DNA of 64,000 bases from positions 163,248 through 227,247 of IMG/VR virus record IMGVR_UViG_3300025012_000026. One strand, written 5' to 3'. Shown piece after piece: positions 10,349-61,149 of the stretch. A program made the position numbers and the translations under genes. The notes beneath the pieces were generated by a model. It was not told where the DNA came from. It ran no database searches and worked only from the letters and a program-made list of their open reading frames with translations. Positions within the stretch are counted from its first letter, which is position 1. Every line of letters begins with the position of its first letter.

Positions 10349-10840
10349 TTAAATCCCCACTTCTACCATTGCTCTGTAATCCATCAAAATACTTTTAATT
10401 CCTATGGAATCAACCACTGGATGATCTATTTCTATTTCATTGATCACTATGTGTTTAAATGGGCAAGTTTTAACAATGCCTAGTTTAACTTCACTTCTTG
10501 AAACTTCTAACATATTAACTCTTTCAATATGGAATGCAATCCCAAATTTTATTTTTATTCCCTTTTCTTGGAGAAGATTTAATTCATTTTTGGCATCCAA
10601 TTCATCTGTATATGTATAATATCCATTCGAAAGCGTTTCAGAATAAGAATATATATATCTCCTAATTTGTTTGTCATATGAGATTGAGTTAACTCCTACA
10701 AAATTTCCTCTACTATCTTTTAATACAAATACTTCTAATTCTGTCATTAATTCAACTGCCCCCTTTATATTTTTTAGTGAAACCAAATGCTTGTTCCTTT
10801 CTGAGCATATTTTAGGAACATATATTCTCCCTTTGCCCAA
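10349..10840 (-). CDS. Hypothetical protein
   Basis: ORF track. Confidence 0.55.
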   Translation of the reverse strand: MGKGRIYVPKICSERNKHLVSLKNIKGAVELMTELEVFVLKDSRGNFVGVNSISYDKQIRRYIYSYSETLSNGYYTYTDELDAKNELNLLQEKGIKIKFGIAFHIERVNMLEVSRSEVKLGIVKTCPFKHIVINEIEIDHPVVDSIGIKSILMDYRAMVEVGI

Positions 10841-10992
10841 TTACATTATCCCACTTTGTCCATCCAATTGCAAAACAAAAATTATATGCATATAACCATT
10901 CTTTCGACAAAATAATTTTAAATTAGATTTAATTATTTTTATACTCTCATGTATTTTAAGTTTAGACTGATATAATTGGGTCTACAGTCCCA

Positions 10993-12003
10993 TCACTTAG
11001 GGACTGTAGACTTAGTTTGTGTTTGCTTATAAGTCTCATACATTTCTTTTAATCCTTGCCAACCCCTTTCATCCAATTCTAAGTCTTTAAATAATTGCTT
11101 AAAATCTTCAGATTTTAATTCACCAAGTTCTATTTCTTTTTGTAAACATCTGTCAAGCATACCGGATTGAAATATAAGAGTTGGATTTAAAAATTTAATA
11201 CCTGTATAAGTTCTAAAGTTTTTAAATCTCGAACTTATATTTCCAACAGTAATTTTTTCATCATTGTCACTACTTTTCCTGTCAAGTGTTCTAAGAATAT
11301 ATGGAGTATCTTTAACAGGCATAATAGCAAATCTTCCGGTATCTTCTCCATTTGATTTATGATAAGTGTCTTCAATGCAAGCCATTCGCAATATTTCCAT
11401 AGTCCTTGGATCTACAGTTATAGGTCTTGGTCGAGGATTTTTAATTTTGTCATCTGGATCTCTAGTTATAATAACTATATTTGATTCAGGGTCTAGATCA
11501 CTCATTTTTAGATTTCTTAATTCTTCATAGGTGTGTCCTTTTATTGTTCTGCCTCTGATATTTTCATATAATGATGCCATTAATGCTTTATCGACATAAT
11601 TATACAATCCGTCACAATAATCATACATTTGTTCTCTAGTGATATAGGAATTTCTCTGAGCTACTTGATGGATATATTTTGGTAAATCTTCTTTTTTATC
11701 AACTAATTTCAATACGTTCATTGAACTGTAATTGTTAAATAAACACCAATCAAGATATTGCATGATAATTGTATAAGATACACCTAATGATTTAAGAGAT
11801 TTCTTTTTCATTCCAATTAGTAATTCTTTTACTTCCTCGTAACTAAATTTGCTCAAATCTTTGTTTTTTTCATGCTCGAATCTACTAACACTTTTTAAGA
11901 TAGAGGTATTTGTCACTCTAGTGCTTTCATTAGGATATTTCTCATCAAGAAAACGATTTTTCAATTCTTCGTTAAATAAAGTTCTTTCAATAGTTAATGA
12001 CAT
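10993..12003 (-). CDS. MrpR/YopR-like master repressor with tyrosine-recombinase fold
   Basis: FNEELKNRFL..FEHEKNKDLSKFSYEEV..QYLDWC N-terminus as recalled for SPbeta YopR; HxxR replaced by NPTLIFQSGML; adjacent to a YopQ-like gene. Confidence 0.75.
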   Translation of the reverse strand: MSLTIERTLFNEELKNRFLDEKYPNESTRVTNTSILKSVSRFEHEKNKDLSKFSYEEVKELLIGMKKKSLKSLGVSYTIIMQYLDWCLFNNYSSMNVLKLVDKKEDLPKYIHQVAQRNSYITREQMYDYCDGLYNYVDKALMASLYENIRGRTIKGHTYEELRNLKMSDLDPESNIVIITRDPDDKIKNPRPRPITVDPRTMEILRMACIEDTYHKSNGEDTGRFAIMPVKDTPYILRTLDRKSSDNDEKITVGNISSRFKNFRTYTGIKFLNPTLIFQSGMLDRCLQKEIELGELKSEDFKQLFKDLELDERGWQGLKEMYETYKQTQTKSTVPK

Positions 12004-13358
12004 TATGATACCTCCTTCTGAAGTTGATAAACAACATCTTTAAAATAATCAGAAATCTTTTTAAATGTAGATAAATTTACATGATTTTCGATTCCAATTT
12101 TTTTCCAAATTTTATTTGATTTATCGAAATCTAAAGAGTTTAATACTTTTACTAATCTAGGTTTCCAGTCATCACCATATTCTTGTCTTAATAAATCTCC
12201 TAAAATAATATACCCCATAAACATGTTGTTATGTGCAAGATATGAATTTTCTTTGGTATTAGATAATTCTGTTTTAAACTTTGAATAATTGAGTCCAATA
12301 ATATTATTGAACAACTCTACAATATCATTTTCAACTTGTGCGGTTCTAATAACTGGCTCCTCTTTAAGATCATAAAGAAATTCAATGGATTTTGATAAAG
12401 TATCAAATGTCATTAATTTGTTTTCAATAATCAATTCCTTTTCATTTAAGGCTATACGATTAAACATTTCGTTTGCCCTTTGTCTAGAATTAATAGCTTT
12501 TGCTACTTCCATATTTGGATTGGCTGTATTTTTAAAATCAACCCATTCAGTTTCAATTTGTGTACTTTTACTTTCTTGTCGAATTATTTCATTGGCACGC
12601 TCTTCTGTAACGTGGTGAATATAAATTGATGTAACCCTATCTATGTCATTCTTAATTTCAACAGTTTTTAACATGCCACAGGTTCTATTTGCACCATCAA
12701 TTATGTCTACTAACGTAGACGCATTATCTGGTTCAATTAATAACGTTCTAGTTTTAAGATCATACTTAAACTTTTCTTGTCCATTTATTTTGCGAATGTT
12801 CCACATAATAGCATTAGTGCAAAAAGAACCATCTATCATTGACTCTGTAATTTCTGATACCTTTTTGCTGTCAATATTAATAGATTCAACAATTCTGTTT
12901 CCACTTCGTCTTTTTAAAAGTTGTCTTTGAGTATTTGGATTATATGTTAATAGTCCATTACCCATATAAAGATTAATATTTTGATAAGTTTCCTTTGTAC
13001 ATAACCATTGACTATCATCTATTTGATCGACATTATGAAGTAAAATATACTTAACTTTTTCTTTATCAAGTTTTTTGTAATAATCAGCAGAAGACAATTC
13101 AATCTCTGTAAAGAACTCATCTGGATTTATTTCTGTTCGGTGAGTGTATCCATAAAGATATTTTGTAAATAAACATAGTTCAATTTCTTCAACATAAACC
13201 AAAGGAATTGCTTTAGTGAATATACCTGTAGTTCTGCCCCTCGGTATACCTCTTTCTAATAATTTGCCTATGACTTGCTCTTGAATTTGATTGTCATTTG
13301 AATAATCTTCAATGACTAAATTAAGAATATCCTCAAGAATTTGACGATCTTGTTTCAT
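12003..13358 (-). CDS. YopQ-like protein (DndB/DGQHR ParB-like domain)
   Basis: YNPNTQR and IIDGANR motifs; ~450 aa; stop/start overlap with the repressor gene; start MKQDRQ after RBS AAGGAGG. Confidence 0.7.
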   Translation of the reverse strand: MKQDRQILEDILNLVIEDYSNDNQIQEQVIGKLLERGIPRGRTTGIFTKAIPLVYVEEIELCLFTKYLYGYTHRTEINPDEFFTEIELSSADYYKKLDKEKVKYILLHNVDQIDDSQWLCTKETYQNINLYMGNGLLTYNPNTQRQLLKRRSGNRIVESINIDSKKVSEITESMIDGSFCTNAIMWNIRKINGQEKFKYDLKTRTLLIEPDNASTLVDIIDGANRTCGMLKTVEIKNDIDRVTSIYIHHVTEERANEIIRQESKSTQIETEWVDFKNTANPNMEVAKAINSRQRANEMFNRIALNEKELIIENKLMTFDTLSKSIEFLYDLKEEPVIRTAQVENDIVELFNNIIGLNYSKFKTELSNTKENSYLAHNNMFMGYIILGDLLRQEYGDDWKPRLVKVLNSLDFDKSNKIWKKIGIENHVNLSTFKKISDYFKDVVYQLQKEVS

Positions 13359-13431
13359 AATATTTATTCCTCCTTTTGACATATCAGCAACAAGTTATGT
13401 TGCTATGTATTGGTTAATAATACGCAATGCT

Positions 13432-13530
13432 ATTATAATATATAATATGCCAATACGTCAAGAAGAATGCCTGATTAGTTTTATTATTTATGATTATATC
13501 ATTATAACATTATTGATTGCATAATGTCAA
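13432..13530 (-). promoter_or_regulatory. Tandem sigmaA promoters for the yopQ/mrpR-like operon
   Basis: TTGACA(13530)-18-TATAAT with extended TG, and TTGACG(13461)-18-TATAAT. Confidence 0.6.
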
Positions 13531-13569
13531 ATAATTTATTTTATACACTTGATTATCATATCTCTCACC

Positions 13570-14379
13570 TTAATTAATCATATTCTCATAATCTTGATTC
13601 CCAACATTTTCACAAACCATTTGTGCTGTTTTTTCTTTGCATAAATAATGATTAATTACCATTAGTAACCATGTTAAAAATATTACTGGAATAGATGTTA
13701 TTATAACAATAGCAATTAGTTCATCAATAAATTGTAATTTAATTATAATGCTATTGTTTTCTACTAATTTGTTCATATAATTTACCACTAGAACTCTAGT
13801 TGACAATACTAACAACAAACCACTAATAATAAATTTATTTCTGATAACCGAACTAAATAGATTAATTTTTACTTTGCTGTTTTTTCTAACTAGAATTAAG
13901 GAAACAATACATAGATGCAAAATTTTGATTGGAATGGCCCATAAGATATTGTACATGACATTATCATTAAAAAAACTATATGGCTTATCTAATAACGATA
14001 ATAGAAGTGGACAGTATGCGTATTCTATTATTCCTACAATGACGAAGCTTCCGACTGTATAGATTGCTGTTTTAAATATTAATGATATGTTTATGTCAAA
14101 ACTGTTTGTGATGACTATGTATTCCATTAAGATTATCATTAGAAACATAATTGATAATATAGAATTTTGTTTTGGTACTATGATAATATACTTGAAGATA
14201 TTTGCCATTATTGCTACTGGTAATGCTGTGAGCATAATCCATGTTAGACTACGTTTCCACATTAAAATATCTAGTAGATCATTAATTTTTAAAAGTGATA
14301 ATGCGATGATTACAATGAACATTTGTTCAGGGAGGCCAACAAATATGGTGTTTAGGATGGCATTTGTTATGGATTGCAT
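13570..14379 (-). CDS. Polytopic membrane protein resembling an AgrC/VirS sensor domain, without kinase domain
   Basis: About 7 hydrophobic segments; immediately downstream of agrB; paralog of 16216-17001 (MQSITNAILNTIFVGLPEQMF vs MQGVTNALLNMVLISLPEEIF). Confidence 0.6.
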   Translation of the reverse strand: MQSITNAILNTIFVGLPEQMFIVIIALSLLKINDLLDILMWKRSLTWIMLTALPVAIMANIFKYIIIVPKQNSILSIMFLMIILMEYIVITNSFDINISLIFKTAIYTVGSFVIVGIIEYAYCPLLLSLLDKPYSFFNDNVMYNILWAIPIKILHLCIVSLILVRKNSKVKINLFSSVIRNKFIISGLLLVLSTRVLVVNYMNKLVENNSIIIKLQFIDELIAIVIITSIPVIFLTWLLMVINHYLCKEKTAQMVCENVGNQDYENMIN

Positions 14380-14397
14380 ATGGGTGTTCACTCCTTT

Positions 14398-15030
14398 TTA
14401 TTTTATTTTTGAATCTAGCGCAGAATAAACAATTTGCCCTATTCTGCTTATACTAAATAATTCTAATAATAATCCAAAACAACTTGAAATTACAATAATC
14501 TTTAGATTGAAAAGTAGGGAGATGGTCATTATGATTGTCCATATAAATAGATAATATGATGACCATCTTTTGAATTTTTTGATTTCTAATGGCTCTGTGA
14601 TTGGTTTATTTGGTGTATCTCTAGGTACATAACGATAAATTATATACATTGTCATTACAACACAGAAATTGAATAAATACCACATGTCTATAAATGACCA
14701 ATATTGGAGTGTATATTTGATTAATAATGCTGATCCAATGAACTGAATGGTTGAAAAAGTTATACATTTATTATATTCCCCGAAATGGTATCCACCTGCT
14801 ATGATACGTAAACTACTGAAGGTCAAGGCGATTATTAGGGTAGGAAGCTTTATGCTAAAAATAGATGCTAAAGATACCATTAACATAGCCTTAAAAATAG
14901 CACCCCAAACTACCATGAAACCATATGTGAAAACCTCAATCTGATCTTCTACGGTAGGATATTTATCATTAGGTACTTTTTTTGCTAACCACTTAGCAGA
15001 ATGATTTGATACAAATTCTATAAAACTCAT
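14398..15030 (-). CDS. agrB: AgrB-family peptide maturation protease
   Basis: EVFTYGF; LRIIAGGYH..KC catalytic His/Cys; YVPRDTPNKPI. Confidence 0.95.
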   Translation of the reverse strand: MSFIEFVSNHSAKWLAKKVPNDKYPTVEDQIEVFTYGFMVVWGAIFKAMLMVSLASIFSIKLPTLIIALTFSSLRIIAGGYHFGEYNKCITFSTIQFIGSALLIKYTLQYWSFIDMWYLFNFCVVMTMYIIYRYVPRDTPNKPITEPLEIKKFKRWSSYYLFIWTIIMTISLLFNLKIIVISSCFGLLLELFSISRIGQIVYSALDSKIK

Positions 15031-15057
15031 TAAATTATTTAATCTTCCTTTCTTTTA

Positions 15058-15861
15058 TCATGCATAAGCCACCTGTTGCCCTACACTAGTATAATTATTT
15101 TCTTGTATATTCTGTCTGATTGGTTTAACTTTATTTAGATTTTTCAAAGTCTCTATTGCTTCCTCTTCGTTTACATGTAATTCTAAAATACCCTCAGATT
15201 TCATAAGGGCAATTTCAACTTTCAACATTATATTTGAAGGACATTCAGCGACTTTTTGAAATACTCCATTCTTTCCTATTAATCTTCTTTTTGATATTGT
15301 GTTTGGTAATTCACAACATATAATAGAGTCCTGTGGGATATTACATTCTTTACTGCTTGCGAAAACGTGAGTCGGCATCTTAGCTTTGGATCTAGTTGTC
15401 ATCGCTATGACAATAGAGTTGCTAGAGCAAGCATTCCCCTTATTATTTTGCACCACAAGCACCATTCTTGGGCCGCCTACTTCACTATCTATCCCTTTGT
15501 CACCAAAGTCTGCGAAACAAAAATCTCCTCTTCTGACACGAATATTTTTTATTTGCTCTAAATCATTATTTGCATATAAAGAGTATCCACATGCTATTTT
15601 TAGATCCTGCAACGAAACCCTACCTTCTGAATTATTTGCGAAAACATTGAGGGTTTGAACGTTCGGATAAACATTTATTTTTTCACGAACGATAAGTTCT
15701 ATGTACCCTCCTTCAATTTTGCAGTCTGCTCCAAAATTATTGATTGTCCTATGGGTTCCTTTAGCAAGCATAATTAAACTAGCTAGTTTCTTAAAATCCT
15801 TTTTGGCATTTACCTCAGTGTTGGTGGTATTAGTTGATTTGGCAAATAATTTGTTGAACAT
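15058..15861 (-). CDS. N-terminal HTH-like domain fused to a MazF/PemK endoribonuclease domain
   Basis: C-terminal RRGDFCFADF..SEVGGPRMVLVVQNNKGN..AMTT..KMPTHV..DSIICCE; N-terminus resembles an XRE HTH (RTINNFGADCKI..LKIACGY). Confidence 0.8.
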   Translation of the reverse strand: MFNKLFAKSTNTTNTEVNAKKDFKKLASLIMLAKGTHRTINNFGADCKIEGGYIELIVREKINVYPNVQTLNVFANNSEGRVSLQDLKIACGYSLYANNDLEQIKNIRVRRGDFCFADFGDKGIDSEVGGPRMVLVVQNNKGNACSSNSIVIAMTTRSKAKMPTHVFASSKECNIPQDSIICCELPNTISKRRLIGKNGVFQKVAECPSNIMLKVEIALMKSEGILELHVNEEEAIETLKNLNKVKPIRQNIQENNYTSVGQQVAYA

Positions 15862-15924
15862 AATAATGCACATCCTTTTCATATTTAATAAGATATAAAA
15901 TAATTTTCTTTAACTGATAGTATA

Positions 15925-15954
15925 ATTATATCTTATTATGTATGGATATGTCAA
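15925..15954 (-). promoter_or_regulatory. sigmaA promoter for the HTH-mazF / agrB / sensor operon
   Basis: TTGACA-18-TATAAT. Confidence 0.65.
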
Positions 15955-15993
15955 CATAATTATTTTCAATTGTCTATTAATTTATATTATGGT

Positions 15994-16023
15994 TATAGGA
16001 GAGAACCGAAGTCCTCTCCTATA
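15994..16023 (-). terminator. Stem-loop after agrD (terminator or stabilizing hairpin)
   Basis: Minus strand TATAGGAGAGGAC-TTCG-GTTCTCTCCTATA with UUCG tetraloop; no U-tract. Confidence 0.55.
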
Positions 16024-16040
16024 TGTAAAAGTGATTAAAA

Positions 16041-16160
16041 TTATTTATTTAGACATTTAGGATCTTTTGGTTGATAAGAAAACGCCCAAGAAGCCATATT
16101 TGATGTAAATAGTGCTAACATAGATACTAATCCAGCAAGAACAATATATACTTTCTTCAT
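16041..16160 (-). CDS. agrD: AgrD-like cyclic autoinducing peptide precursor (39 aa, not in ORF track)
   Basis: MKKVYIVLAGLVSMLALFTSNMASWAFSYQPKDPKCLNK*; clostridial AgrD tail YQPKxPKxL; RBS GGAAAGGAGGTGA. Confidence 0.9.
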   Translation of the reverse strand: MKKVYIVLAGLVSMLALFTSNMASWAFSYQPKDPKCLNK

Positions 16161-16215
16161 GTTAATGTCACCTCCTTTCCAAGAATTTATTTATATAACA
16201 AATGCCTTAATCATC

Positions 16216-17001
16216 TTAATCAATAAGATTTTCTTGCGTTTGCTGTATACGTTTTTCTATACCGACTACACAATTTATCATATACCACAACACCATAAGA
16301 AATATAGTTGGTAGACTTAGAATGAATCCTATTGATAATATTTGTTCCCAAATTGGCAATGTGCTTAAGATATTATTATATCCTATCAATTTCACAACAT
16401 AAATTGTAAATAGTGTTAAGAAAGATATTATAAAAATTATCATATTGGTTAATGGTTTATTTTTGAACACTAAATTGTACAATTTGATATTTACTTGTTC
16501 ATTCATCTTAACTATAAAAAATATTATTATTGAGAATTCTAAAATTCTAGAAGGAATTACTAGTAAAAACATATAAGAAATATTTTGATTAAAATATTCA
16601 TAAGGAATTTTTAACAATGAAAACGTTAGTGGCATATAAGCTAATTCAATTAAACTGACTATTATTAGAGTAATCATTGAGTAAACTATGGTTTTAAATA
16701 TTAGTTTATTTTCTTGAGTTATTTCAGTAATTCTTATTATGTAAATAATCGCCAACCAAAATATTATTAATGAGATTATTGATGTTAATAATTTAGGCAA
16801 AATTATAATATACTTAAAAATACTTATACACATTGCCATCAGCAATGAAGGTATTATAATCCACTTAATATTTATTCTCCACATTCTTATGTCAAGTAAA
16901 TCAAATCTTTTGAACAATATTAATGTCATACATGTTACAAATATTTCTTCAGGTAAGGATATAAGAACCATGTTCAATAAAGCATTTGTTACACCTTGCA
17001 T
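16216..17001 (-). CDS. Polytopic membrane protein resembling an AgrC/VirS sensor domain, without kinase domain
   Basis: About 7 TM segments; directly upstream of agrD; paralog of 13570-14379. Confidence 0.6.
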   Translation of the reverse strand: MQGVTNALLNMVLISLPEEIFVTCMTLILFKRFDLLDIRMWRINIKWIIIPSLLMAMCISIFKYIIILPKLLTSIISLIIFWLAIIYIIRITEITQENKLIFKTIVYSMITLIIVSLIELAYMPLTFSLLKIPYEYFNQNISYMFLLVIPSRILEFSIIIFFIVKMNEQVNIKLYNLVFKNKPLTNMIIFIISFLTLFTIYVVKLIGYNNILSTLPIWEQILSIGFILSLPTIFLMVLWYMINCVVGIEKRIQQTQENLID

Positions 17002-17041
17002 ATGTATTACCTCTTTCTTATTCATTTCTTAACCTGTAATA

Positions 17042-17070
17042 AGTATACCATAAGACAAGGTGTAACGCAA
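17042..17070 (-). promoter_or_regulatory. sigmaA promoter for sensor-agrD
   Basis: TTGCGT-17-TATACT with extended TG. Confidence 0.55.
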
Positions 17071-17082
17071 GTATTATTTTAT

Positions 17083-17694
17083 TTATTGATTCATATATAC
17101 CTTATTAATTTCTTTGACTGAACAGTAAACTATTATAAAAGCAAATATTCTTATTAAAATATCACCAATACTCCAAATTGACATACCAAATATATCAAAT
17201 ATATCGGACAAAAATATTAGATTTGTCATATGATCACCTAAAACATGAAAATCATTAAACTTAGAAGCATTCATAATCATATCATACTGAGTGTAACCAG
17301 TTGAATAAGATACATCTGGGAAAATAGGCATCATCCCATGATTAAAGTACATTACAATATAATTCAATACAAATCCACACAAGAGACTACAACAAGCGAT
17401 AATATACTCTTTATACTTCTCATGCCTAAATAGAACATCAAGTCCTAGAATCATATATGATCCTAATATAGCATTCTTTATTATGTGTTGATATTGAAGA
17501 AAGTAGTAATTTTGATTCATTATTGTATATTGTAGATAGATGTAAAATATAGACATTAATATAACTGGATAGATACTCCATCTTTTTAGTATTGGTTTTA
17601 TATTGTATGATTCTTTATGTATTTGGAATTTTCCTAGTTTTATGTAAAGATATATTTTAGAGAATATGAGCGATGCTATTAGTGTCTCGACCAT
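17083..17694 (-). CDS. DUF5317-like membrane protein
   Basis: GFVLNYIVMYFNHGMMP..FLSDIFDI..SIGDILI motifs. Confidence 0.7.
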   Translation of the reverse strand: MVETLIASLIFSKIYLYIKLGKFQIHKESYNIKPILKRWSIYPVILMSIFYIYLQYTIMNQNYYFLQYQHIIKNAILGSYMILGLDVLFRHEKYKEYIIACCSLLCGFVLNYIVMYFNHGMMPIFPDVSYSTGYTQYDMIMNASKFNDFHVLGDHMTNLIFLSDIFDIFGMSIWSIGDILIRIFAFIIVYCSVKEINKVYMNQ

Positions 17695-17754
17695 TTATTG
17701 TATTATCTCCTTTGTATTATTTTGTAATAATTTATTTATTTACAATCATGTATT

Positions 17755-19491
17755 CTACGGAGGTTTATTATTTTGATCTTTAATCATATTCTCATAATCT
17801 ACTAAATACATCCATTTAAGTAATTCACCAGTCTCAAGATCTTTACCACATGTTTTTTGTTTATTTTTGCAACATCTTCCAATTCCGACACGATTTATAT
17901 TATATTCTTTTGATGCGTTTGCAATAGAATTGAATACTTTGTTTGTTGTCAAACATATTATCTTCATATCTCTTGAACTATGTAGTATATACTTTATTTC
18001 TTGTTTATCTTTAAAAATATATTCTTCGTAATACATCCAAACCATCTTTTCCCCTGTTTCGGGATGTTTTCCTGCCGATTTTTGTATACCTAAACAACAT
18101 GATGAAATATCACTATTCCTTATATTATACTTACTTGTTGCATCAGTTATAGAATTAAAAATTTCATTAGTTGTTAAACAAACAACTTTTGTTTGCATTA
18201 CTTCTTTAGTATCATAATCACACCACCCCAATTCTACACCTTGTTTTAAATATCTAGAAACTGTAGAGGTATGAACCTTTATTATATCTGCTATTTCTAC
18301 AGTCCTTTTAATTCCACTATTCCATAAATTACATGAAATTTTAACTAAACTTGAACATCCAGCCTCATGACACTTCAACCAATCTATATCTTTTTCTTTA
18401 AAATTAAGTAATATGGGCAATCTAGACCTCATTATGCTATTCTTTATCCACTCTAACTCAGACTTTCTACAATCGATTATTATGTAATTATTAATATTGT
18501 TTGTTCTCGCTAACCACTCTTTATCAAAATCATTTTCCTGAACTTCTGCTAATGAAACTTTCCAATTACCTGTTATTTCTTCATAATGCTGAATTCCTTG
18601 AATTTCAATGACAATTTTATCTAATTTTTCTATGTAAAAATCATATCTGTATCCACCACACCATTTAAAAGTTATTTTACTCAATTGAGATTTAAAATTT
18701 AGATGTAATTGTTCTAAAAAAGATAGAAAGAACTTCTCTGGATAACTCACACCATCGGAACATCTAGGGCAAGCAAATCCATGTACTACTAAGGTGCTAA
18801 AATTTAAATTTTTATCATATCCACAATCTGGACATTTCATAGGTATTTTTGGATTTGATCCAAAAGAATGTTTATTTGCATCTTCTTTATTTACCAAATA
18901 CTTAATTAAATGTGGATGAGTTGTCACAACCATATTACACATATTGCAATCAAGACTTCCATTTTGTCCATTTGTAAAACTACTAATACTTTTTAATTCA
19001 CTTTCATGTTCTGGATGTTCTAAACACTTAAACCAATAACCTTTTTTATTAAAACCTGCGGAACTAAAGCTTACATCATTAGGGCTTAATACTTTCCCAT
19101 TTTTTATATTTTTTGCATCATCCCATCTAGATAATATCCAATCTGCCAATTCTTTAGGGAGATTATCGTAACACCATTGATAAAAAGATTTACTATTTTT
19201 TAATTTTGTAATTCTTCCATTTTCACTCACAAACAGTTTTATGGCACATTTTATACAATAATATTTTTCACCCTCATGTCTTAAATCTATATAATGTCGC
19301 CATATGACATTTTTTATAATTTCTCCGCAACCATCACACTGAATATCGACTAATGCGTGTGAACTATGAGGTAAATCCTCTACTTTCACTTCGAATTCAT
19401 TGCCCATTTTTGTAAAGATATAATCTCTTTGTTCATAATATTTTTTAATACTTGCATTCCATTTCATTTTTACGGTTTTAGTTATTAACAA
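17755..19491 (-). CDS. Free-standing homing-endonuclease-like protein (Zn ribbons, Vsr/PD-(D/E)XK-like nuclease, NUMOD1 repeats)
   Basis: Several CxxC pairs; SYPEKF..YRYDFYI..IEIQGIQHY; two C-terminal VCLTTN.FNSI.A repeats. Confidence 0.7.
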   Translation of the reverse strand: MLITKTVKMKWNASIKKYYEQRDYIFTKMGNEFEVKVEDLPHSSHALVDIQCDGCGEIIKNVIWRHYIDLRHEGEKYYCIKCAIKLFVSENGRITKLKNSKSFYQWCYDNLPKELADWILSRWDDAKNIKNGKVLSPNDVSFSSAGFNKKGYWFKCLEHPEHESELKSISSFTNGQNGSLDCNMCNMVVTTHPHLIKYLVNKEDANKHSFGSNPKIPMKCPDCGYDKNLNFSTLVVHGFACPRCSDGVSYPEKFFLSFLEQLHLNFKSQLSKITFKWCGGYRYDFYIEKLDKIVIEIQGIQHYEEITGNWKVSLAEVQENDFDKEWLARTNNINNYIIIDCRKSELEWIKNSIMRSRLPILLNFKEKDIDWLKCHEAGCSSLVKISCNLWNSGIKRTVEIADIIKVHTSTVSRYLKQGVELGWCDYDTKEVMQTKVVCLTTNEIFNSITDATSKYNIRNSDISSCCLGIQKSAGKHPETGEKMVWMYYEEYIFKDKQEIKYILHSSRDMKIICLTTNKVFNSIANASKEYNINRVGIGRCCKNKQKTCGKDLETGELLKWMYLVDYENMIKDQNNKPP

Positions 19492-19558
19492 TTAGCAACA
19501 CCTTTTTGCCAATTGTTAATAACTTTATATTTTTCAATAAACATCCTTCTCCTTTTAT

Positions 19559-19981
19559 TTATGCATACACAATATTCTTATCTTTCTGACCTATTGAGAA
19601 TTGAATAAGTATACCTTGATTTATACGTTCCATAGTTTCAGAATTACAATATCCAACTTTCTTCAAAAATATATCTTCATTTTTGTTAACTAACATAACT
19701 TGTTCACAGAGAGCAATAGAATCTCTTAATAGTCCTGAAGAGTTTTTATTTATGCTTTTGTGAGTTGGTAATTTTGACTTCGTGCCGATAGAACTAATTG
19801 GACATATATGCACAACTGGACTGTAGCGATTTGCCATATTATTACTTACAATTATGCATGGACGCAATTTTCCTTGGATAGATCCCTTGCCTTCTCCTAG
19901 ATCAACTAACCATATCTCTCCTCGATTAAATTGTTGTGGTTGTTGAACATTATTTATTACATTTTGCATAATAATTATCAC
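19559..19981 (-). CDS. mazF: MazF/PemK family endoribonuclease with no adjacent antitoxin
   Basis: RGEIWLVDL..GSIQGKLRPCIIVSNNMANRYSP..KLPTH..RDSIALCEQ. Confidence 0.9.
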   Translation of the reverse strand: MIIIMQNVINNVQQPQQFNRGEIWLVDLGEGKGSIQGKLRPCIIVSNNMANRYSPVVHICPISSIGTKSKLPTHKSINKNSSGLLRDSIALCEQVMLVNKNEDIFLKKVGYCNSETMERINQGILIQFSIGQKDKNIVYA

Positions 19982-23069: not shown

Positions 23070-24779
23070 TTATTTCAAAACTCTCGCTCTAATTTCTGCT
23101 AAACTTTCATCTCTTACTAATTTTCCATCAATAAATACATCTTCAAGTAAATCAATAATATCAATTGCATCTTTTTCCATTTCATTTAATCCATCAACCA
23201 AATAGATACCATTTTCACCATCAACTACTGCAACCATTCCTTTTTGAGATTTTTTGATTCCACCAATATCGGTTTTAGGATCTTTAAAGATAAACTTTTC
23301 AACTCCATCAATAACCGTATAAGTGGCCTTTAAAGCGAACGAAAATGTGTCTCTGGTGTGATAACCTAAAGAATAACTTCCAACTCCGTATACGATGTTT
23401 TCTGCTGAAAACCCCTTTGCTTCTAATTGTTTGAAAGTTTCTTCTGCAATTTCTGGACTTATGCTATCTCCATATATTAAGCCCACATGACTATCTAGTA
23501 CCTTATACCCTTTACTATTAATAGTTCCTCCAAAGGTATCCCATAATGCTTCTACAGAACCCTTTTGCTCTATAGTTAATTTTACTTCTTTACAAATATG
23601 AACATTAGCACCATCAATATAATAATATTGTTTATCATGTCTATTCCAATCAATTTCAATAACAATTTCATAATGCTTATCTTGAAATTTAAAAATTGCA
23701 TCTTGCCTAGAAATACCATGTTCTCCATGAGGTGTATCATTTCTTATATCGTCAATTATTCTCTCCAACATAATTTCCTTGCAATCTTCCAGATTATCAC
23801 AATATTCTTCATTGGTTAAATCTTCAACAATCACATTACCGCAAATAATCTTTATTGGACTTCCAGAATCAGGACGAATGACACACTTACCATTTCTACT
23901 CATAATATCATCTTTCAATGAAGGTAAAATATTCCCCAAGACATTAAAATAATCATACCCATCACTAACTATACTTACAATTCCACTAGGGGCAACTTCA
24001 GTAATCATTCTCTTAAAATATCTCAAATCATCTTGATATCCACATTGAATACTATGTTCCGTTGCTAACACACTTGCTGAAACTAATTCCTTTTCCACAT
24101 TAACACCATAATATTGCTCTAAATATTGAATACTTGGAATCGTATCACTACCAGTAAAATATAATAAATGTCCTGCTCCTGTAGTTACTGCATCTTCATG
24201 ACCACTCATACCTCTATAACTAAAATTATGACATTGCCATTGAATATGATCTTTACTATCACATGTTTTCTCAGCCCACTTTTCACAAATGTCTCTATAT
24301 TTCTTTACAATTGTTGTTGCAGTAATTACTTTCCACATATTTGCGGAAATCAATGTCTCTAAGAAATTAGTCAACCAATAGAACTCTTTTTTAGTATTTT
24401 CAATTGTAAACACAGGAACTTTCATTGGAATCAATGTGCCTTCTTTTACTGCCTTGATTTTAATAGGAAGGTATCCTAAATCATGTAATGCTTCAATATG
24501 AGTTGTATCTGCACAATTATCTCCTAGAGAATTTTTAATGATTCTTTTATAATCTGCAACTACTATTGATTTATCAACATTGAAAAAGTTTTCATTGAAA
24601 TTATCAATTAGATAATCTTTAATAAATCCTTGTAAACCAAAGAATACTACTTCATTAATTCCTTCAATTCTTGAATGTCTAGGCGTAAATGTAGAATAAA
24701 TTTTTTCTGTACCTTTTTCACTCATAATGAGGTGGCTTATTTTGTACGAATCTGTCATTAACATTGGATTTGTTTTCAT
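23070..24779 (-). CDS. Nicotinamide phosphoribosyltransferase-like (Namat-like in NARP1 context)
   Basis: TDSYKISH, FFGLQ, HNFSYRG, ATEHS, SIVSDGYD, VIRPDSG, GLIYGDSI, KDPKTD..KKSQKG. Confidence 0.92.
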   Translation of the reverse strand: MKTNPMLMTDSYKISHLIMSEKGTEKIYSTFTPRHSRIEGINEVVFFGLQGFIKDYLIDNFNENFFNVDKSIVVADYKRIIKNSLGDNCADTTHIEALHDLGYLPIKIKAVKEGTLIPMKVPVFTIENTKKEFYWLTNFLETLISANMWKVITATTIVKKYRDICEKWAEKTCDSKDHIQWQCHNFSYRGMSGHEDAVTTGAGHLLYFTGSDTIPSIQYLEQYYGVNVEKELVSASVLATEHSIQCGYQDDLRYFKRMITEVAPSGIVSIVSDGYDYFNVLGNILPSLKDDIMSRNGKCVIRPDSGSPIKIICGNVIVEDLTNEEYCDNLEDCKEIMLERIIDDIRNDTPHGEHGISRQDAIFKFQDKHYEIVIEIDWNRHDKQYYYIDGANVHICKEVKLTIEQKGSVEALWDTFGGTINSKGYKVLDSHVGLIYGDSISPEIAEETFKQLEAKGFSAENIVYGVGSYSLGYHTRDTFSFALKATYTVIDGVEKFIFKDPKTDIGGIKKSQKGMVAVVDGENGIYLVDGLNEMEKDAIDIIDLLEDVFIDGKLVRDESLAEIRARVLK

Positions 24780-24780
24780 A

Positions 24781-25281
24781 TTATTTTACCTCTTTCTTAT
24801 TCATATTATTTAAATACTCAGCAACTTCTTCTAACGATTTAAAATACATTCCACCATTTCTTTCTACTATTAATCCGACCTGATTTAAAGATTTCATTTC
24901 TCCAATTGAAAAATTAATCTTATCATTTGGATAATTAATTTTATCTATAAACATATTAATATCAGGACTTCCAAGATAGCACATTGGATTTGGTACTTGT
25001 GTAATTATTGGAACTTCAGAATTTAATATACAAAATATAGTTTTTCCAGGACGTTTGTTGCTATCATCTATAACTTCTGCAATACTATAGACTCCACTCA
25101 TAGACGGAGTAATTACATATAAACAATAATCACATGTTTCACGTTGTCTACGCTCTTCTATCATACATTCTTCAGTCCAATCCTCTACAACTGGATTAAA
25201 ATAGTTAATATTAAGCATTGGAATTAATTTGTCTCTCCATATACTATTATTACAAGTACCGCCAAGGAATACTTTACTCAT
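24781..25281 (-). CDS. Nucleoside 2-deoxyribosyltransferase-like protein
   Basis: VFLGGTCNNSIWR..YFNPVVEDW..GVYSIAE. Confidence 0.75.
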   Translation of the reverse strand: MSKVFLGGTCNNSIWRDKLIPMLNINYFNPVVEDWTEECMIEERRQRETCDYCLYVITPSMSGVYSIAEVIDDSNKRPGKTIFCILNSEVPIITQVPNPMCYLGSPDINMFIDKINYPNDKINFSIGEMKSLNQVGLIVERNGGMYFKSLEEVAEYLNNMNKKEVK

Positions 25282-25284
25282 GAC

Positions 25285-26109
25285 TTAATTACCTTCTTTC
25301 ATAATTTTATATACTTCAATTTTATCATTTAATGATTCATTCATAATAGTATCTGTAGTGAAAACTTTATCAATCAAGTCTGTTTTAAATACATCGCCTT
25401 TGTAAATTGATTCCTCGCAATGTCCAACAACAAGATAAATTTCAGAAGCTCCAAGTTCTTTAAGTTGTTTTGCACCAAGCAAAAATGTTCCTCCATAACT
25501 TGATAAGTCATCCAACATTATTACTTTAAATCCTTTTTTCTTAACATCTCCAAAAACTTGAAGACTAGTAATTTTACCTGTTTGAAAATCTCTATGTTTA
25601 AATCCAACTAATTGATTTGGAACGCCAATCATTTTACTATAACGTTTCTCACTCGAAGCATCTGGGAAATAAACATAATCAGTATCATCATTGAAATTAA
25701 TTTTGTCTTTAATATCATAAAAAATATCTACAGATAGGAATCTACTTTTACAATTATTTAATAATGCAGGAGTTACATCAGAATGTGGTTCCAATACATG
25801 AATATAATCAAACCCTAAATTATTAATAAATTCTGCAATATATTTTAGTGTAAATGCTGAACCTCCTTCCGATCTATCCATTCTACTGTATGGCATGTAC
25901 ATGATATGTAGATTACAATTTATTTTTAATTGGTCTAGATATTTCTTTAAGAACAATAGTTTAATCAAGTCTGCATCTGATTGATACTTAAATGTAGTTA
26001 ACGAATTATTAACACCTCCTAAAATCTCATTAATTTGTTGTTCATTGAGTTTTGTTTCCCCATTTGGGAATGTAGTAAAATCTAATAGTTTGTTATTTAA
26101 CCAAATCAT
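25285..26109 (-). CDS. Ribose-phosphate pyrophosphokinase-like (Adps-like)
   Basis: FPNGE, YMPYSRMDR, EPHS, FPDASSEKRY, KHRDFQTG, LDDLSSYGGTF; start MIWLNNK after RBS. Confidence 0.9.
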   Translation of the reverse strand: MIWLNNKLLDFTTFPNGETKLNEQQINEILGGVNNSLTTFKYQSDADLIKLLFLKKYLDQLKINCNLHIMYMPYSRMDRSEGGSAFTLKYIAEFINNLGFDYIHVLEPHSDVTPALLNNCKSRFLSVDIFYDIKDKINFNDDTDYVYFPDASSEKRYSKMIGVPNQLVGFKHRDFQTGKITSLQVFGDVKKKGFKVIMLDDLSSYGGTFLLGAKQLKELGASEIYLVVGHCEESIYKGDVFKTDLIDKVFTTDTIMNESLNDKIEVYKIMKEGN

Positions 26110-26205
26110 TTTGTTTCCTCCTGAAATATTTATTTCTATATTCATACTACCACAATTTAGCATAATAAGTCAAGTTTAATTTAAACATCCTTTAAAATTT
26201 GATTT

Positions 26206-36745: not shown

Positions 36746-37468
36746 CTAACAAGCCACATCGCCACAATACATTTCTGCTAAATCAAATATTTTCTTCTCT
36801 GTCCTACTTACAATCTTCTGACTCAAATTCAATACTTCACCAACTTCTCTTTGATTAAATCCATACTTAAATCTTAACTTATAAACTTCTAACATTTGAT
36901 CTGATAATAAACTTAAAAAATCATTCAATATTATTTCATTTTCTAATTCTCTTCCGGTGTCCCCTTGAATTAAATCTGCTAAAATATTACTTGATTCATT
37001 TTCATCCAATCCTCTATCCAAACTATCAATTAATGAACATTGATTCAATACCTGTATTCCTGATTTAATTAACTTTAAGGAAATATTTAATTTCTGTGAT
37101 ATTTCTTTCGGATTATCTTCTTCGAGATAACCTGCTTTCCTAATTTTTGCAACAGTTTCTTTAACTGAATTAGGAATTGATATAAAATCATAATTAGCAC
37201 GAATATTATTGCTTATTTCTCCCCAAATCATAGGAACAGCATATGTACTAAATTTTATTTCACTTCCATTCTCTCCTTTGAATTTAGTAGGATTGAATTT
37301 TTCATATGCTTTAATTAGTCCTATGTATCCAATGCTTAGAATATCATCTTTTTCTAATCCTTGTTTATATAGCTTATGATAAAATTTTAATGCAACAGAA
37401 TTGGCAAGTTTCATATTGTTTCTGATGAATGTATCTGGATCTTCTTTGATGTGTGGATTAGTTTTCAT
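36746..37468 (-). CDS. Phage RNA polymerase sigma factor, SigF/SigG/SigB-like
   Basis: NMKLANSVA, DDILSIGYIGLIKAYEKFNP, KFSTYAVPMIWGEI, QREVGEVLNLSQKIVSR. Confidence 0.9.
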   Translation of the reverse strand: MKTNPHIKEDPDTFIRNNMKLANSVALKFYHKLYKQGLEKDDILSIGYIGLIKAYEKFNPTKFKGENGSEIKFSTYAVPMIWGEISNNIRANYDFISIPNSVKETVAKIRKAGYLEEDNPKEISQKLNISLKLIKSGIQVLNQCSLIDSLDRGLDENESSNILADLIQGDTGRELENEIILNDFLSLLSDQMLEVYKLRFKYGFNQREVGEVLNLSQKIVSRTEKKIFDLAEMYCGDVAC

Positions 37469-53287: not shown

Positions 53288-54253
53288 TTATCTTGCTGTA
53301 TTTGAAGTATATTCATCTGTTTCAATTATTTTATATGCTTCAGAACAAAGCTCCCATCTCCCATTCTTATCTATGATATCTAGATAATTAACCTTACCTT
53401 TTAATGTGCTTGGTTTATAAGGATCTTTACCTTCTGCTACTCTTTCTTCATTGATTTTATCCCATTCATTCTTGCGTCTTTGATAAACATCAAAACTTCC
53501 CAATGTTTTCATTTTGCCAAATAACGCATTATATGCTTTAGATTTATCTCTTCCAAAATATTTGTTAGCTAAGATAACCATCTTTTCTGAGAAATTTGTT
53601 CTATCACATATGTATAATTGTTGCCCTTTAATTAGTTCTGTATCGGCTTTTATATCATCAACTTGACTTTGTATTAATGCCAACATTTTTGATTGTTTAT
53701 ATGTAGTCAAGTCAGTTACCTTAGAATTATAAGCAAATTGCATAAGCATATCATTAGGGTTATTAGTTAAAGTTTGTTTTAGATTATATATTGTTAGAGT
53801 GAGATTTCTTTCCGTTTCATCTTCTATAAGCATGATATTATTTTCTGTAGAATCAAATTTACCTGTTCTTTGAATCTGAGAAATTATTGCTTTAACTTTC
53901 TTTTTGAATTGTTTTGCTTGAGGAAGGAGTGAGTTATAAATCAAATCAAATACACCATCTTCATTTATGAATACCTCACCTCTATTTCCTATAGTATAAT
54001 TTTCGTAACCTCCCAAGTTACGAAAACTTTCTTTCGTAACGAGGAACCTACTTTCTTCATCTATATTATTTGTAATGGCTTTAGACAAATTAACTCTCTC
54101 ACTTTCTTTAGTAGTACAATTATCTGCATAACCTAAAATTTTAGAAACTTGTTTGCCATTGAATAATACAGTACCTTCAAACTCAAAATTTACATCATCT
54201 TTTGTTAGGATTTCTAACTCTTGTCCTTCAAAAATTGTTAATTCATTACTCAT
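53288..54253 (-). CDS. BRO-N domain antirepressor-like protein
   Basis: VLFNGKQVSKILGY..FINEDGVFDLIYNSLLPQAKQFKKKV..IQRTGKF. Confidence 0.85.
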   Translation of the reverse strand: MSNELTIFEGQELEILTKDDVNFEFEGTVLFNGKQVSKILGYADNCTTKESERVNLSKAITNNIDEESRFLVTKESFRNLGGYENYTIGNRGEVFINEDGVFDLIYNSLLPQAKQFKKKVKAIISQIQRTGKFDSTENNIMLIEDETERNLTLTIYNLKQTLTNNPNDMLMQFAYNSKVTDLTTYKQSKMLALIQSQVDDIKADTELIKGQQLYICDRTNFSEKMVILANKYFGRDKSKAYNALFGKMKTLGSFDVYQRRKNEWDKINEERVAEGKDPYKPSTLKGKVNYLDIIDKNGRWELCSEAYKIIETDEYTSNTAR

Positions 54254-60258: not shown

Positions 60259-61149
60259 TTATGCCATGATTGCTTTCTTCATTGACTCAATTGTACCCTC
60301 TAGTAATTTAACCCTATTATTAAGGTCGGTAGTGACCATAGAGAACATTTGCATGAAGTCATATATTCCACTGAGGTTTATATTATCTTTAGTTATTACA
60401 ACACTATTCTCCAACTTTTCCTTAATTTCTTGAACCGTAAAATAAGAATTCACTAATTGTCTTTGTACCTCCCACGATAAGTCATCGGAGAATGATTTTA
60501 CTAGCATCATATAGCCAGTTTCAGTTATTAGTGTCAGACCACGATTAGGAATTTCTAAAAGACGAAATTCGTCCTTTTGATTTTTAGACACAATAAAGTA
60601 ATCTACGCCTTCAATAAATCTATCTCTATTGTTTTTAAAATTTCTACTCGCCGTTCCATTCGGTCTTTTATGAACTGCATCAATATCCTTAAATGTTACA
60701 ACTCGATTACCCTTAAAATCCTTTACCATTATATCTTGTTTATTTATTTTTATATATTCCTGCAAATCAACTACATTATTTTGTGTAATAATTTCTTCTT
60801 CCTTATCAATTTTAGTTACTGCCGTAATTGGACTTTCAACACTTTTATAACAATGATTTATCTCTAAAGGACTTACATATGGTTTATCAAGAAGTGTTAA
60901 TTCAAACTCTAATATTTCTTGTTGTCTAACTTTATTATCATATACAAGCCAAACATCAGTTAGATTTCCCACTTTTCCTCTATTTTTAACTTTTTGACGT
61001 TTGAGTTTACCCTCTTCCACCAATGATTTTACTGAATCATTAATACTCTTTTTGTTTAGTCTTACCGCAAGATCAATTTGTAGTATCAAGCGTTTCTCCC
61101 TTACCATTTTAACAATTGCCTTTTTGTGTTCTGTTGTACGATATGCCAT
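60259..61149 (-). CDS. ORF6N domain DNA-binding/antirepressor protein
   Basis: RVVTFKDIDAVHKRPNGTASRNFKNNRDRFIEGVDYF..TETGYMMLVKSFSDDLSWEVQRQLVNSYF. Confidence 0.88.
   Translation of the reverse strand: MAYRTTEHKKAIVKMVREKRLILQIDLAVRLNKKSINDSVKSLVEEGKLKRQKVKNRGKVGNLTDVWLVYDNKVRQQEILEFELTLLDKPYVSPLEINHCYKSVESPITAVTKIDKEEEIITQNNVVDLQEYIKINKQDIMVKDFKGNRVVTFKDIDAVHKRPNGTASRNFKNNRDRFIEGVDYFIVSKNQKDEFRLLEIPNRGLTLITETGYMMLVKSFSDDLSWEVQRQLVNSYFTVQEIKEKLENSVVITKDNINLSGIYDFMQMFSMVTTDLNNRVKLLEGTIESMKKAIMA

Follow-up and report, generated by a model that had tools for sequence, protein, structure and literature searches.

Phage peptide communication is known from arbitrium, and phage-borne agr genes are known from the Clostridioides difficile phage phiCDHM1. 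To our knowledge, arbitrium is so far the sole phage-made peptide system shown to guide the choice between lysis and lysogeny, and it is confined to phages of the Bacillus group. Its signal is an imported linear peptide with a cytoplasmic TPR receptor, and in SPbeta and phi3T it acts through the host MazEF (PMC10769878). The phage phiCDHM1 carries agrB, agrD and agrC, the last encoding a full kinase of 453 amino acids (aa), and manipulation of host quorum sensing has been proposed for it (PMC3901668). Both precedents had been invoked, correctly, in an earlier sequence-only reading of the locus described here, a cassette of agr-type peptide genes, MazF-type RNases and membrane proteins of a new family (TM1 and TM2). 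The cassette lies beside a yopQ/yopR-type repressor pair in 64,000 nucleotides of an uncultured viral genome (IMG/VR record IMGVR_UViG_3300025012_000026, positions 163,248 to 227,247; this whole stretch is hereafter called the window).

Like arbitrium, the cassette is a secreted phage peptide system immediately upstream of yopQ/yopR (sroE/sroF), with a MazF RNase in the circuit, many signal and receptor alleles and a structured terminator after the peptide gene. Unlike arbitrium, its predicted signal is an extracellular peptide cyclized by AgrB, with a membrane protein as partner; its MazF is encoded by the phage and joined to an additional domain, and there is no homology to AimR, AimP or AimX. 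It shares phage-borne agrB and agrD with the agr3 locus of phiCDHM1, whereas the latter lies between lysis genes and integrase, with no MazF or MrpR-type repressor nearby. Like canonical agr of staphylococci and clostridia, it has an AgrD with a Ser/Cys-started five-residue ring and conserved tail, an AgrB with a His/Cys dyad, and hypervariable alleles that resemble specificity groups. In contrast to canonical agr, no cassette protein is an AgrC histidine kinase (HisKA/HATPase); a kinase-less seven-helix family and a fusion of an N-terminal domain to MazF (N-domain::MazF) stand in place of AgrC/AgrA, and the genes run TM-agrD, agrB being placed at another point of the cassette. What is new is the kinase-less family, together with the MazF fusion, the large number of pherotypes and the constant placement next to MrpR. 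Literature searches for agr at the arbitrium position returned nothing relevant, and the cassette architecture was found neither described in the papers searched nor in deposited phages.

The reading to which we give most weight, at a little under an even chance, is an arbitrium-like cyclic-peptide switch of the phage, in which TM1 would be an allele-specific receptor and MazF the output, biasing lysogeny or induction.

A cassette kept beside the repressor pair

The ten genes read at 10993-19981 are all real open reading frames (ORFs) of the minus strand and lie in the order first given (mazF, homing-endonuclease-like gene, DUF5317 gene, TM1, agrD, MazF fusion, agrB, TM2, yopQ-like gene, mrpR/yopR-like gene; Table 1). 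Curated cut-offs are passed by AgrB, AgrD, both MazF domains, DUF5317, the DndB domain of the yopQ-like gene and MrpR_N_CB. The YopQ-like protein matches PF14072 at 31.1 bits (cut-off 29.1) and phrog_5732 at E 4e-58, and is 23% identical to phi3T_96 over 394 aa (E 1e-18). The MrpR-like protein scores 64 bits for MrpR_N_CB (cut-off 27) and 23 bits for MrpR_C_cat, which is under the cut-off of 27 for that model. It is 29% identical to phi3T_97 over 297 residues (E 8e-31) and matches 71 phage records, mostly SPbeta-like and other large Bacillus phages.

In phi3T, which has the integrase-fold SroF/YopR as repressor, the genes run aimR-aimP-aimX-92-93-94-yopP-yopQ-yopR in the same orientation. The cassette is likewise directly upstream of, and co-oriented with, the yopQ/yopR homologues, so the claim that it occupies the arbitrium position is borne out. 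Out of 29 phi3T proteins of the arbitrium region compared with the window by tblastn, YopQ and YopR alone match; the earlier observation that the window lacks AimR also agrees with this search, as phi3T AimR, AimP and AimX gave no match at E 0.01. A long dispersed SPBRE-like motif, a possible repressor site, was not obvious anywhere in the 64-kb window, where ribosome-binding-site-like repeats alone were seen. A perfect 12-bp hairpin (10980-11011; -24.4 kcal/mol, z -4.0) lies over the mrpR stop codon, with no U tract after it.

A synteny survey of agrB/agrD and yopQ/yopR, proposed with the sequence-only reading, covered 18 distinct cassettes from metagenomic phage contigs, annotated with phmmer and with HMMs built from the window proteins. 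The order TM1-agrD-N-domain::MazF and an agrB occur in 18/18, and yopQ-mrpR adjoins in all whose contig extends far enough; agrB/agrD are linked to the repressor pair in every examined related locus that reaches there. The linkage persists over three repressor types sharing only 22-35% identity, and it must be old because MrpR identity between cassettes falls to 22-25%. Free mazF, DUF5317 and TM2 are found in most cassettes, TM2 being missing or truncated in some. In layout A, the window type, agrB follows the fusion gene, while in layout B it directly precedes DUF5317, with the agrB stop codon overlapping the DUF5317 start codon; in one cassette (L015) agrB sits beyond mrpR. With one gene set found in 18 distinct cassettes, chance is far from sufficient to explain the arrangement.

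A further protein, c5 (108-163 aa among the cassettes), accompanies yopQ-mrpR in every cassette, either just after mrpR or just before yopQ, and matched no family in family and PADLOC model scans. The antirepressor Sar of phi3T is encoded right past the repressor, and from its position c5 could be the functional counterpart of Sar. Among GenBank phages, megablast of the region gave no match, nor did tblastn of AgrB (E 1e-5) and TM2; tblastn of the MazF fusion returned MazF-domain matches only, with no full-length fusion.

The peptide, its alleles and the membrane-protein family

Production of an agr-type signal by the cassette is near certain. The agrD ATG is preceded by a strong Shine-Dalgarno sequence, and the predicted ring of the window AgrD is a five-residue lactone, S-W-A-F-S, followed by the tail YQPKDPKC. 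An agrD-equivalent ORF is present in 18/18 cassettes; these encode 17 different rings with Ser or Cys first, and a common tail, [Y/H/N]-Q-[P/S]-x-x-P-x-C. All 13 AgrB sequences compared, 11 from the phages, one from a bacterium and that of phiCDHM1, have His82 and Cys89. In addition, numerous polar positions of DUF5317 do not vary among its 12 phage copies (E, N..MP, D.H, D..D, S.GD), an enzyme-like pattern; the protein is a candidate enzyme of autoinducing peptide biogenesis or export. Among the bacterial loci examined, of TM-AgrD and of AgrB-AgrD type, none has DUF5317, and a literature search found no paper mentioning the family. A link between DUF5317 and the TM family, seen in BLAST clustering, was dismissed as compositional (hhalign E 0.35).

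No model in Pfam, PHROG, NCBIfam or PADLOC matched TM1 or TM2. An exhaustive TM profile search yielded 209 clusters, and among the 150 of these listed the relatives are all of at most 326 aa, which leaves no space for a kinase domain. The TM proteins are therefore a new kinase-less family and not AgrC-type kinases, and they are paired with AgrD in bacteria too. An AlphaFold2 model built from 116 relatives (pLDDT 95.3) has seven long helices; just 10 sequences gave a poor model (pLDDT 63.6). Matches to G-protein-coupled receptors and channels in a profile search of PDB sequences were dismissed as compositional, and a profile search of genome contigs with a narrow TM alignment found nothing. A literature search for kinase-less AgrC-like proteins likewise turned up nothing relevant. 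TM1 stands directly upstream of agrD in 18/18 phage cassettes, while TM2 has no peptide gene of its own and is the more conserved of the two (column conservation 0.60-0.88 vs 0.40-0.71 for TM1).

TM1 and the AgrD ring vary together, as pherotype-like alleles might. Three phages that are 98-100% identical in agrB, TM2, yopQ and mrpR have different rings, and their TM1 proteins are just 39-49% identical; AgrB is 100% identical in three phages with different AgrD rings. The window phage and a close relative (L002) share AgrB (100%), TM2 (100%) and the MazF fusion (99%), yet their rings differ, and TM1 identity is 39% when the pair is aligned globally (42% when read from the multiple alignment). 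Their upstream genes differ as well (DUF5317 84%, endonuclease 51% and mazF 53% identical). Since AgrB, TM2 and the fusion are kept, the exchanged unit is TM1 and agrD with the genes upstream. Conversely, two cassettes sharing the ring S-F-A-F-T have the highest TM1 identity seen (84%), with AgrB only 65% identical. In the alleles of the window, L002 and L008, the first 41 residues of TM1 are 76-85% conserved and helices 2-7 are 12-49% conserved, a pattern compatible with a signalling face that stays constant and a ligand pocket that varies.

Across cassettes, Mantel correlations with ring similarity are significant for AgrB (r 0.77, p 0.0005), TM1 (r 0.63, p 0.0005), the MazF fusion (r 0.46, p 0.0005) and DUF5317 (r 0.42, p 0.0035). 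They are not significant for TM2 (r 0.23, p 0.07), free MazF (r 0.19, p 0.08), YopQ (r -0.12) and MrpR (r -0.11). From this pattern, agrB, DUF5317, TM1, agrD and the MazF fusion are one evolutionary unit, which recombines freely with the repressor unit.

The TM-AgrD pair is not restricted to phages. In 6/6 bacterial loci reached through the TM family, the TM gene is directly followed by an AgrD-type ORF. In the other direction, a search of reference genomes for the AgrD tail found 14 AgrD genes, preceded by a TM gene in 8, by agrB in 3 and cut off in 3, so that TM lies directly upstream of AgrD in 8/11 assessable tail-pattern loci. An XRE-type helix-turn-helix (HTH) gene adjoins 7-8 of 11 assessable bacterial TM-AgrD loci, and the N-domain of the phage fusion is homologous to one of these adjoining regulators. 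One pair occurs in a cultured cellulolytic organism, Pseudobacteroides cellulosolvens ATCC 35603 (L052, 5938-6966). The metagenome-assembled genome (MAG) of Clostridia bacterium SKW257 holds at least three AgrD loci (L044, L048, L050), two with a TM gene and none with an adjacent agrB.

The chances are considerable that the TM-AgrD-regulator module by itself constitutes a novel mechanism of signalling. A kinase-less membrane protein working with a small XRE-type DNA-binding protein in peptide quorum sensing has a precedent in CylR1/CylR2 of the Enterococcus faecalis cytolysin operon. Judged by description, the phage cassette differs in that CylR1 is small and not seven-helical, the signal there is a lantibiotic subunit, and no RNase takes part. 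Some clostridial agr loci pose the puzzle of agrBD without a cognate agrCA. The TM-AgrD(-XRE) modules bear on such loci; phages aside, they point to an undescribed way of sensing agr peptides without a histidine kinase, and the presence of the module in cultured P. cellulosolvens makes this testable.

From peptide to repressor: a proposed mechanism and its alternatives

In the preferred reading, AgrB, probably aided by DUF5317, would cut the YQPK.PKC tail from the 39-aa AgrD and close the lactone ring, and producing cells would release the ring peptide (S-W-A-F-S in the window phage). The peptide would accumulate with the number of infected or lysogenic cells of the same allele and be bound by TM1 as an allele-specific receptor of seven helices without a kinase domain. 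TM1 may then touch the cytoplasmic N-domain::MazF fusion, transcribed from its own consensus promoter, and so relay the signal to it directly, and possibly to free MazF too; the contact might use the conserved first helix, the first cytoplasmic loop and the C-terminal helix. The RNase activity of MazF, possibly with binding of the N-domain at the inverted repeat, would shift the balance at the yopQ-mrpR operon. A parallel would be phi3T, where MazF remains active under a high arbitrium signal and lysogeny is favoured. TM2 could be a second receptor for another signal, e.g. from the host or another phage. What the analysis shows are the identities of the genes, their catalytic residues, the conserved synteny and the joint variation of TM1 and AgrD alleles; the steps from peptide accumulation onwards are inferred.

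The MazF domains of the proposed output keep their catalytic residues. The fusion consists of an N-terminal domain of ~105 aa, MazF and a C-terminal tail of ~40 aa; its PemK domain spans residues 110-221 of the 267-aa protein (117-228 in the 274-aa ORF). Its catalytic Arg and Thr align with those of Bacillus anthracis MoxT (4hke), which is closely homologous to EndoA of B. subtilis. In free MazF, aligned to the Staphylococcus aureus and B. subtilis MazF proteins, the catalytic Arg is retained and Thr is replaced by Ser. Both MazF domains are closest to the MazF proteins of B. subtilis, B. anthracis and S. aureus, and relatives of the ~260-aa fusion form 46 clusters. The N-domain has seven invariant residues (G35, F43, P66, L71, L87, G92, Y93). 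The earlier label 'sensor' for the TM proteins names a proposed role. In the label HTH-mazF the MazF part stands, and the HTH part is tentative, its support being transitive only: the N-domain matches a bacterial 211-aa protein adjoining a TM-AgrD pair (E 3e-09), and an HTH_3 match (8e-06) arises in one member of the fusion alignment, presumably that same bacterial protein. As in type II MazEF, MazF/PemK domains with catalytic residues are present; unlike type II MazEF, there is no MazE-like antitoxin gene. ORFs upstream of mazF vary by cassette and encode a Cys-rich 87-aa, a membrane or a 130-aa protein. UACAU, the motif of B. subtilis-type MazF, gave no signal in cassette genes when compared with synonymous shuffles. 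The fusion ends in ...QQVAYA (15058-15180), related fusions in VAFA, VSFA or VAY, and free MazF in ...NIVYA (19559-19600). We take these hydrophobic C-termini to recall ssrA-like degradation tags, in which case the RNases may be unstable.

A transcription boundary separates agrD from the fusion. A hairpin following agrD is present in 15/16 cassettes with different stem sequences, and a U run follows it in five layout B cassettes (L024, L026, L027, L029, L030). The -35 and -10 elements of the fusion promoter are conserved across diverged cassettes. The repeat TAAGATAT-N31-ATATCTTA, a candidate operator, spans the -10 box and the early transcribed region; it occurs once in the window (0.01 expected) and is kept in 5/7 layout A cassettes, with a one-base variant in the other two.

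We put TM1 as a receptor moderately ahead of TM1 as a maturation factor, for several reasons. An AgrB with an intact catalytic dyad is present in each phage cassette anyway, and AgrB can stay identical while ring and TM1 change. The TM family is nearly without invariant residues, which are many in AgrB and DUF5317; the first 41 residues are constant and helices 2-7 variable. In most phages a further TM paralogue occurs with no further peptide, and the TM profile is collinear with the AgrC sensor domain. The assignments of receptor and of output each stand at even or slightly better, and the link of the cassette to lysis/lysogeny is an even call. Of the sequence-only interpretation, the location, the cited literature and the repressor linkage hold up, and its functional part keeps the strengths given here.

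A broader proposal, which we hold more tentatively than the switch itself, is that the seven-helix proteins are a new receptor class for agr peptides acting by direct contact to a small DNA-binding partner. Clostridia would pair this receptor with XRE regulators; a clade of large phages would have captured it and fused the partner to MazF. The result would be an arbitrium-equivalent switch with many pherotypes, in which TM2 listens to another signal. If the switch reading is true, communication between phages has arisen on more than one occasion, each time out of another bacterial toolkit, and has converged on the same repressor module and on MazF.

Several observations weigh against the switch. 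Both host and phage are uncultured, and the only pointers to a temperate lifestyle are the repressor homologue and the genes for anti-repressors. Known transducers, such as a kinase or a response regulator, were not found in the cassette, and AgrA, Response_reg and LytTR had no match there or across the 20 kb for which Pfam calls had been precomputed. Foldseek of the TM model against PDB gave noise only (TM-score ~0.2). In hhalign, the TM family aligns with the AgrC profile over 200 collinear columns that are exactly the AgrC sensor domain (E 6e-4; at most 20 columns for the controls AgrB, E 0.45, and DUF5317, E 0.35), a similarity that is weak (probability 29%), too weak to prove homology. 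TM1 fills the slot upstream of agrD that agrB usually has, and for most bacterial TM-AgrD pairs AgrB is missing from the surrounding 7-8 kb; given both, TM1 may instead act in peptide maturation or export. Ring similarity is correlated with AgrB at the r of 0.77 given above. On the output side, Pfam gave no HTH match in 13 phage fusions, the N-domain compared with a classical XRE neighbour reached only E 0.11 in hhalign, no MazE-like antitoxin gene was found upstream of mazF by family match, and no antitoxin was found for either MazF. Finally, the free reshuffling of signalling and repressor units speaks against close co-evolution of a protein contact that links the two; the coupling would be generic, or the co-location a mere hot spot of lysogeny-expressed genes.

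This last point leads to the main alternative, which we regard as unlikely though well worth keeping: an accessory module, expressed in lysogens, that would serve kin recognition, superinfection exclusion or abortive infection. The peptide would mark cells carrying a prophage of the same allele, presence or absence of the signal would gate the MazF toxins, and the module would adjoin the repressor merely because the region is transcribed in lysogens. Two MazF-type toxins without a recognizable antitoxin would suit such a role, as would consensus promoters, which fit constitutive expression, and strong allelic diversification, as in recognition systems under diversifying selection. Reshuffling against repressor type is what would be expected of a self-contained accessory module, and the agr genes of phiCDHM1 lie in a conversion region between lysis genes and integrase and are not known to be a decision switch. 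However, no cassette protein matches a PADLOC defence model, the place upstream of yopQ-mrpR is kept over deep divergence and two gene orders, which is rare for accessory genes, and the parallel with arbitrium is close, MazF included.

A more doubtful alternative, which cuts across both the switch and the accessory module, makes the TM family a biosynthetic, export or immunity partner of AgrD, such as a leader peptidase, an exporter or a substitute for AgrB. A host AgrC-type kinase would then detect the peptide, or the phage would not sense it in any way, and host quorum sensing would be manipulated, as proposed for phiCDHM1 (PMC3901668). The TM gene always lies directly upstream of agrD, often tightly spaced, in the usual agrB slot; AgrB is lacking near most bacterial pairs, and one bacterial locus has the biosynthetic-operon-like order agrB-TM-agrD. 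It also counts for this alternative that agr maturation needs further membrane proteases (SpsB and MroQ in S. aureus). Against it, Pro25 and Glu26 alone are near-invariant (>=90%) across 116 family members, unlike an enzyme, AgrB or DUF5317, and there is no AgrB similarity (E 0.45). Most phages have a second TM paralogue but no second peptide, and AgrB can be 100% identical while ring and TM1 change. In addition, AgrDs adjoining TM genes share their tail with those adjoining AgrB, so an ordinary AgrB would still process them.

Co-location of a toxin, an agr pair and membrane proteins without common function, to which the mosaic nature of the region and its mobile homing endonuclease might point, is effectively excluded by the recurrence of the gene set in 18 cassettes despite 20-35% protein identity and two gene orders, by the co-variation of agrB, DUF5317, TM1, agrD and fusion as a single unit, and by the conserved hairpin-promoter boundary between agrD and the fusion.

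Feature coordinates, the phage and neighbouring genes

Table 1. Positions in the window of cassette genes, regulatory elements and a neighbouring gene set
Feature	Position	Strand	Basis or remark
Free-standing MazF/PemK RNase, 136 aa	19559-19969; alternative GTG start 19981	-	PF02452 PemK_toxin, E 6e-24
Homing-endonuclease-like gene, 578 aa	17755-19491	-	PHROG HNH/homing endonuclease families, E 4e-21
DUF5317 membrane protein	17083-17694	-	PF17248, E 2e-18
TM1, 7-helix membrane protein	16216-17025	-	matches no known family
agrD precursor, 39 aa	16041-16160	-	TIGR04223, 30.8 bits vs cut-off 19
GC-rich 13-bp hairpin directly after agrD, transcription-unit boundary	15994-16023	-	-19.7 kcal/mol, z -5.7
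Sigma-70-type consensus promoter for MazF fusion-agrB-TM2 unit	15925-15954	-	TTGACA-18-TATAAT, 12/12
Inverted repeat, candidate operator	15889-15935		TAAGATAT-N31-ATATCTTA
N-domain::MazF fusion, 267 aa	15058-15861; alternative start 15882 (274 aa)	-	PemK domain
AgrB peptidase/cyclase	14398-15030	-	PF04647, E 1e-34
TM2, paralogue of TM1	13570-14379	-	39% identical to TM1
Sigma-70-type consensus promoter, extended -10, for yopQ-mrpR	13501-13530	-	second 11/12 site 13432-13461
YopQ/SroE-like protein, DndB-like domain	12003-13382	-	PF14072, phrog_5732
MrpR/YopR/SroF-like integrase-fold repressor	10993-12003	-	MrpR_N_CB
c5 companion protein, 132 aa (as called on JGI contig)	10349-10747	-	conserved
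NAMPT/NAPRTase	23070-24779	-	
Nucleoside deoxyribosyltransferase-like gene	24781-25281	-	
Ribose-phosphate pyrophosphokinase-like (PRPP-synthetase-like) gene	25285-26163	-	

Identical AgrB copies occur on many metagenomic contigs, including a 158-kb JGI contig and contigs of the groundwater metagenome PRJNA268031, and in IMG/VR the same locus is present on viral contigs of 227 and 230 kb. Because of these copies, the viral contigs and the phage-type genes elsewhere in the window, its source is a large uncultured phage. The base composition of the window is ~29% G+C, and one related locus was binned in a MAG of 'Clostridium sp.'; the hosts are Clostridia-like. Every sizeable ORF of the window is on the minus strand. 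Two Ant-type anti-repressor genes and a phage sigma factor (53288-54253, 60259-61149 and 36746-37468, minus strand) are consistent with a temperate phage with several layers of control.

The homing-endonuclease-like gene is a mobile passenger outside the system. Its homologues occupy a different site in almost every related cassette (L008, L021, L025, L029, L030) or are absent, and the gene moves or goes missing even between near-identical phages. In L021 a homologue sits at the site where TM2 is cut to 98 aa. The Pfam NUMOD-like match of the 578-aa protein falls under its cut-off.

A small protein with a cREC_REC receiver-like domain (PF20274; 5831-6172, minus strand) is encoded a few kb downstream of the repressor and is kept in several related phages. 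The minus strand also carries a gene set of NAD-salvage type (23070-26163). Further, a Pistol self-cleaving ribozyme is present at 62809-62882 on the same strand, as a full-length match to Rfam RF02679 at 55.3 bits, against a gathering threshold of 34.5.

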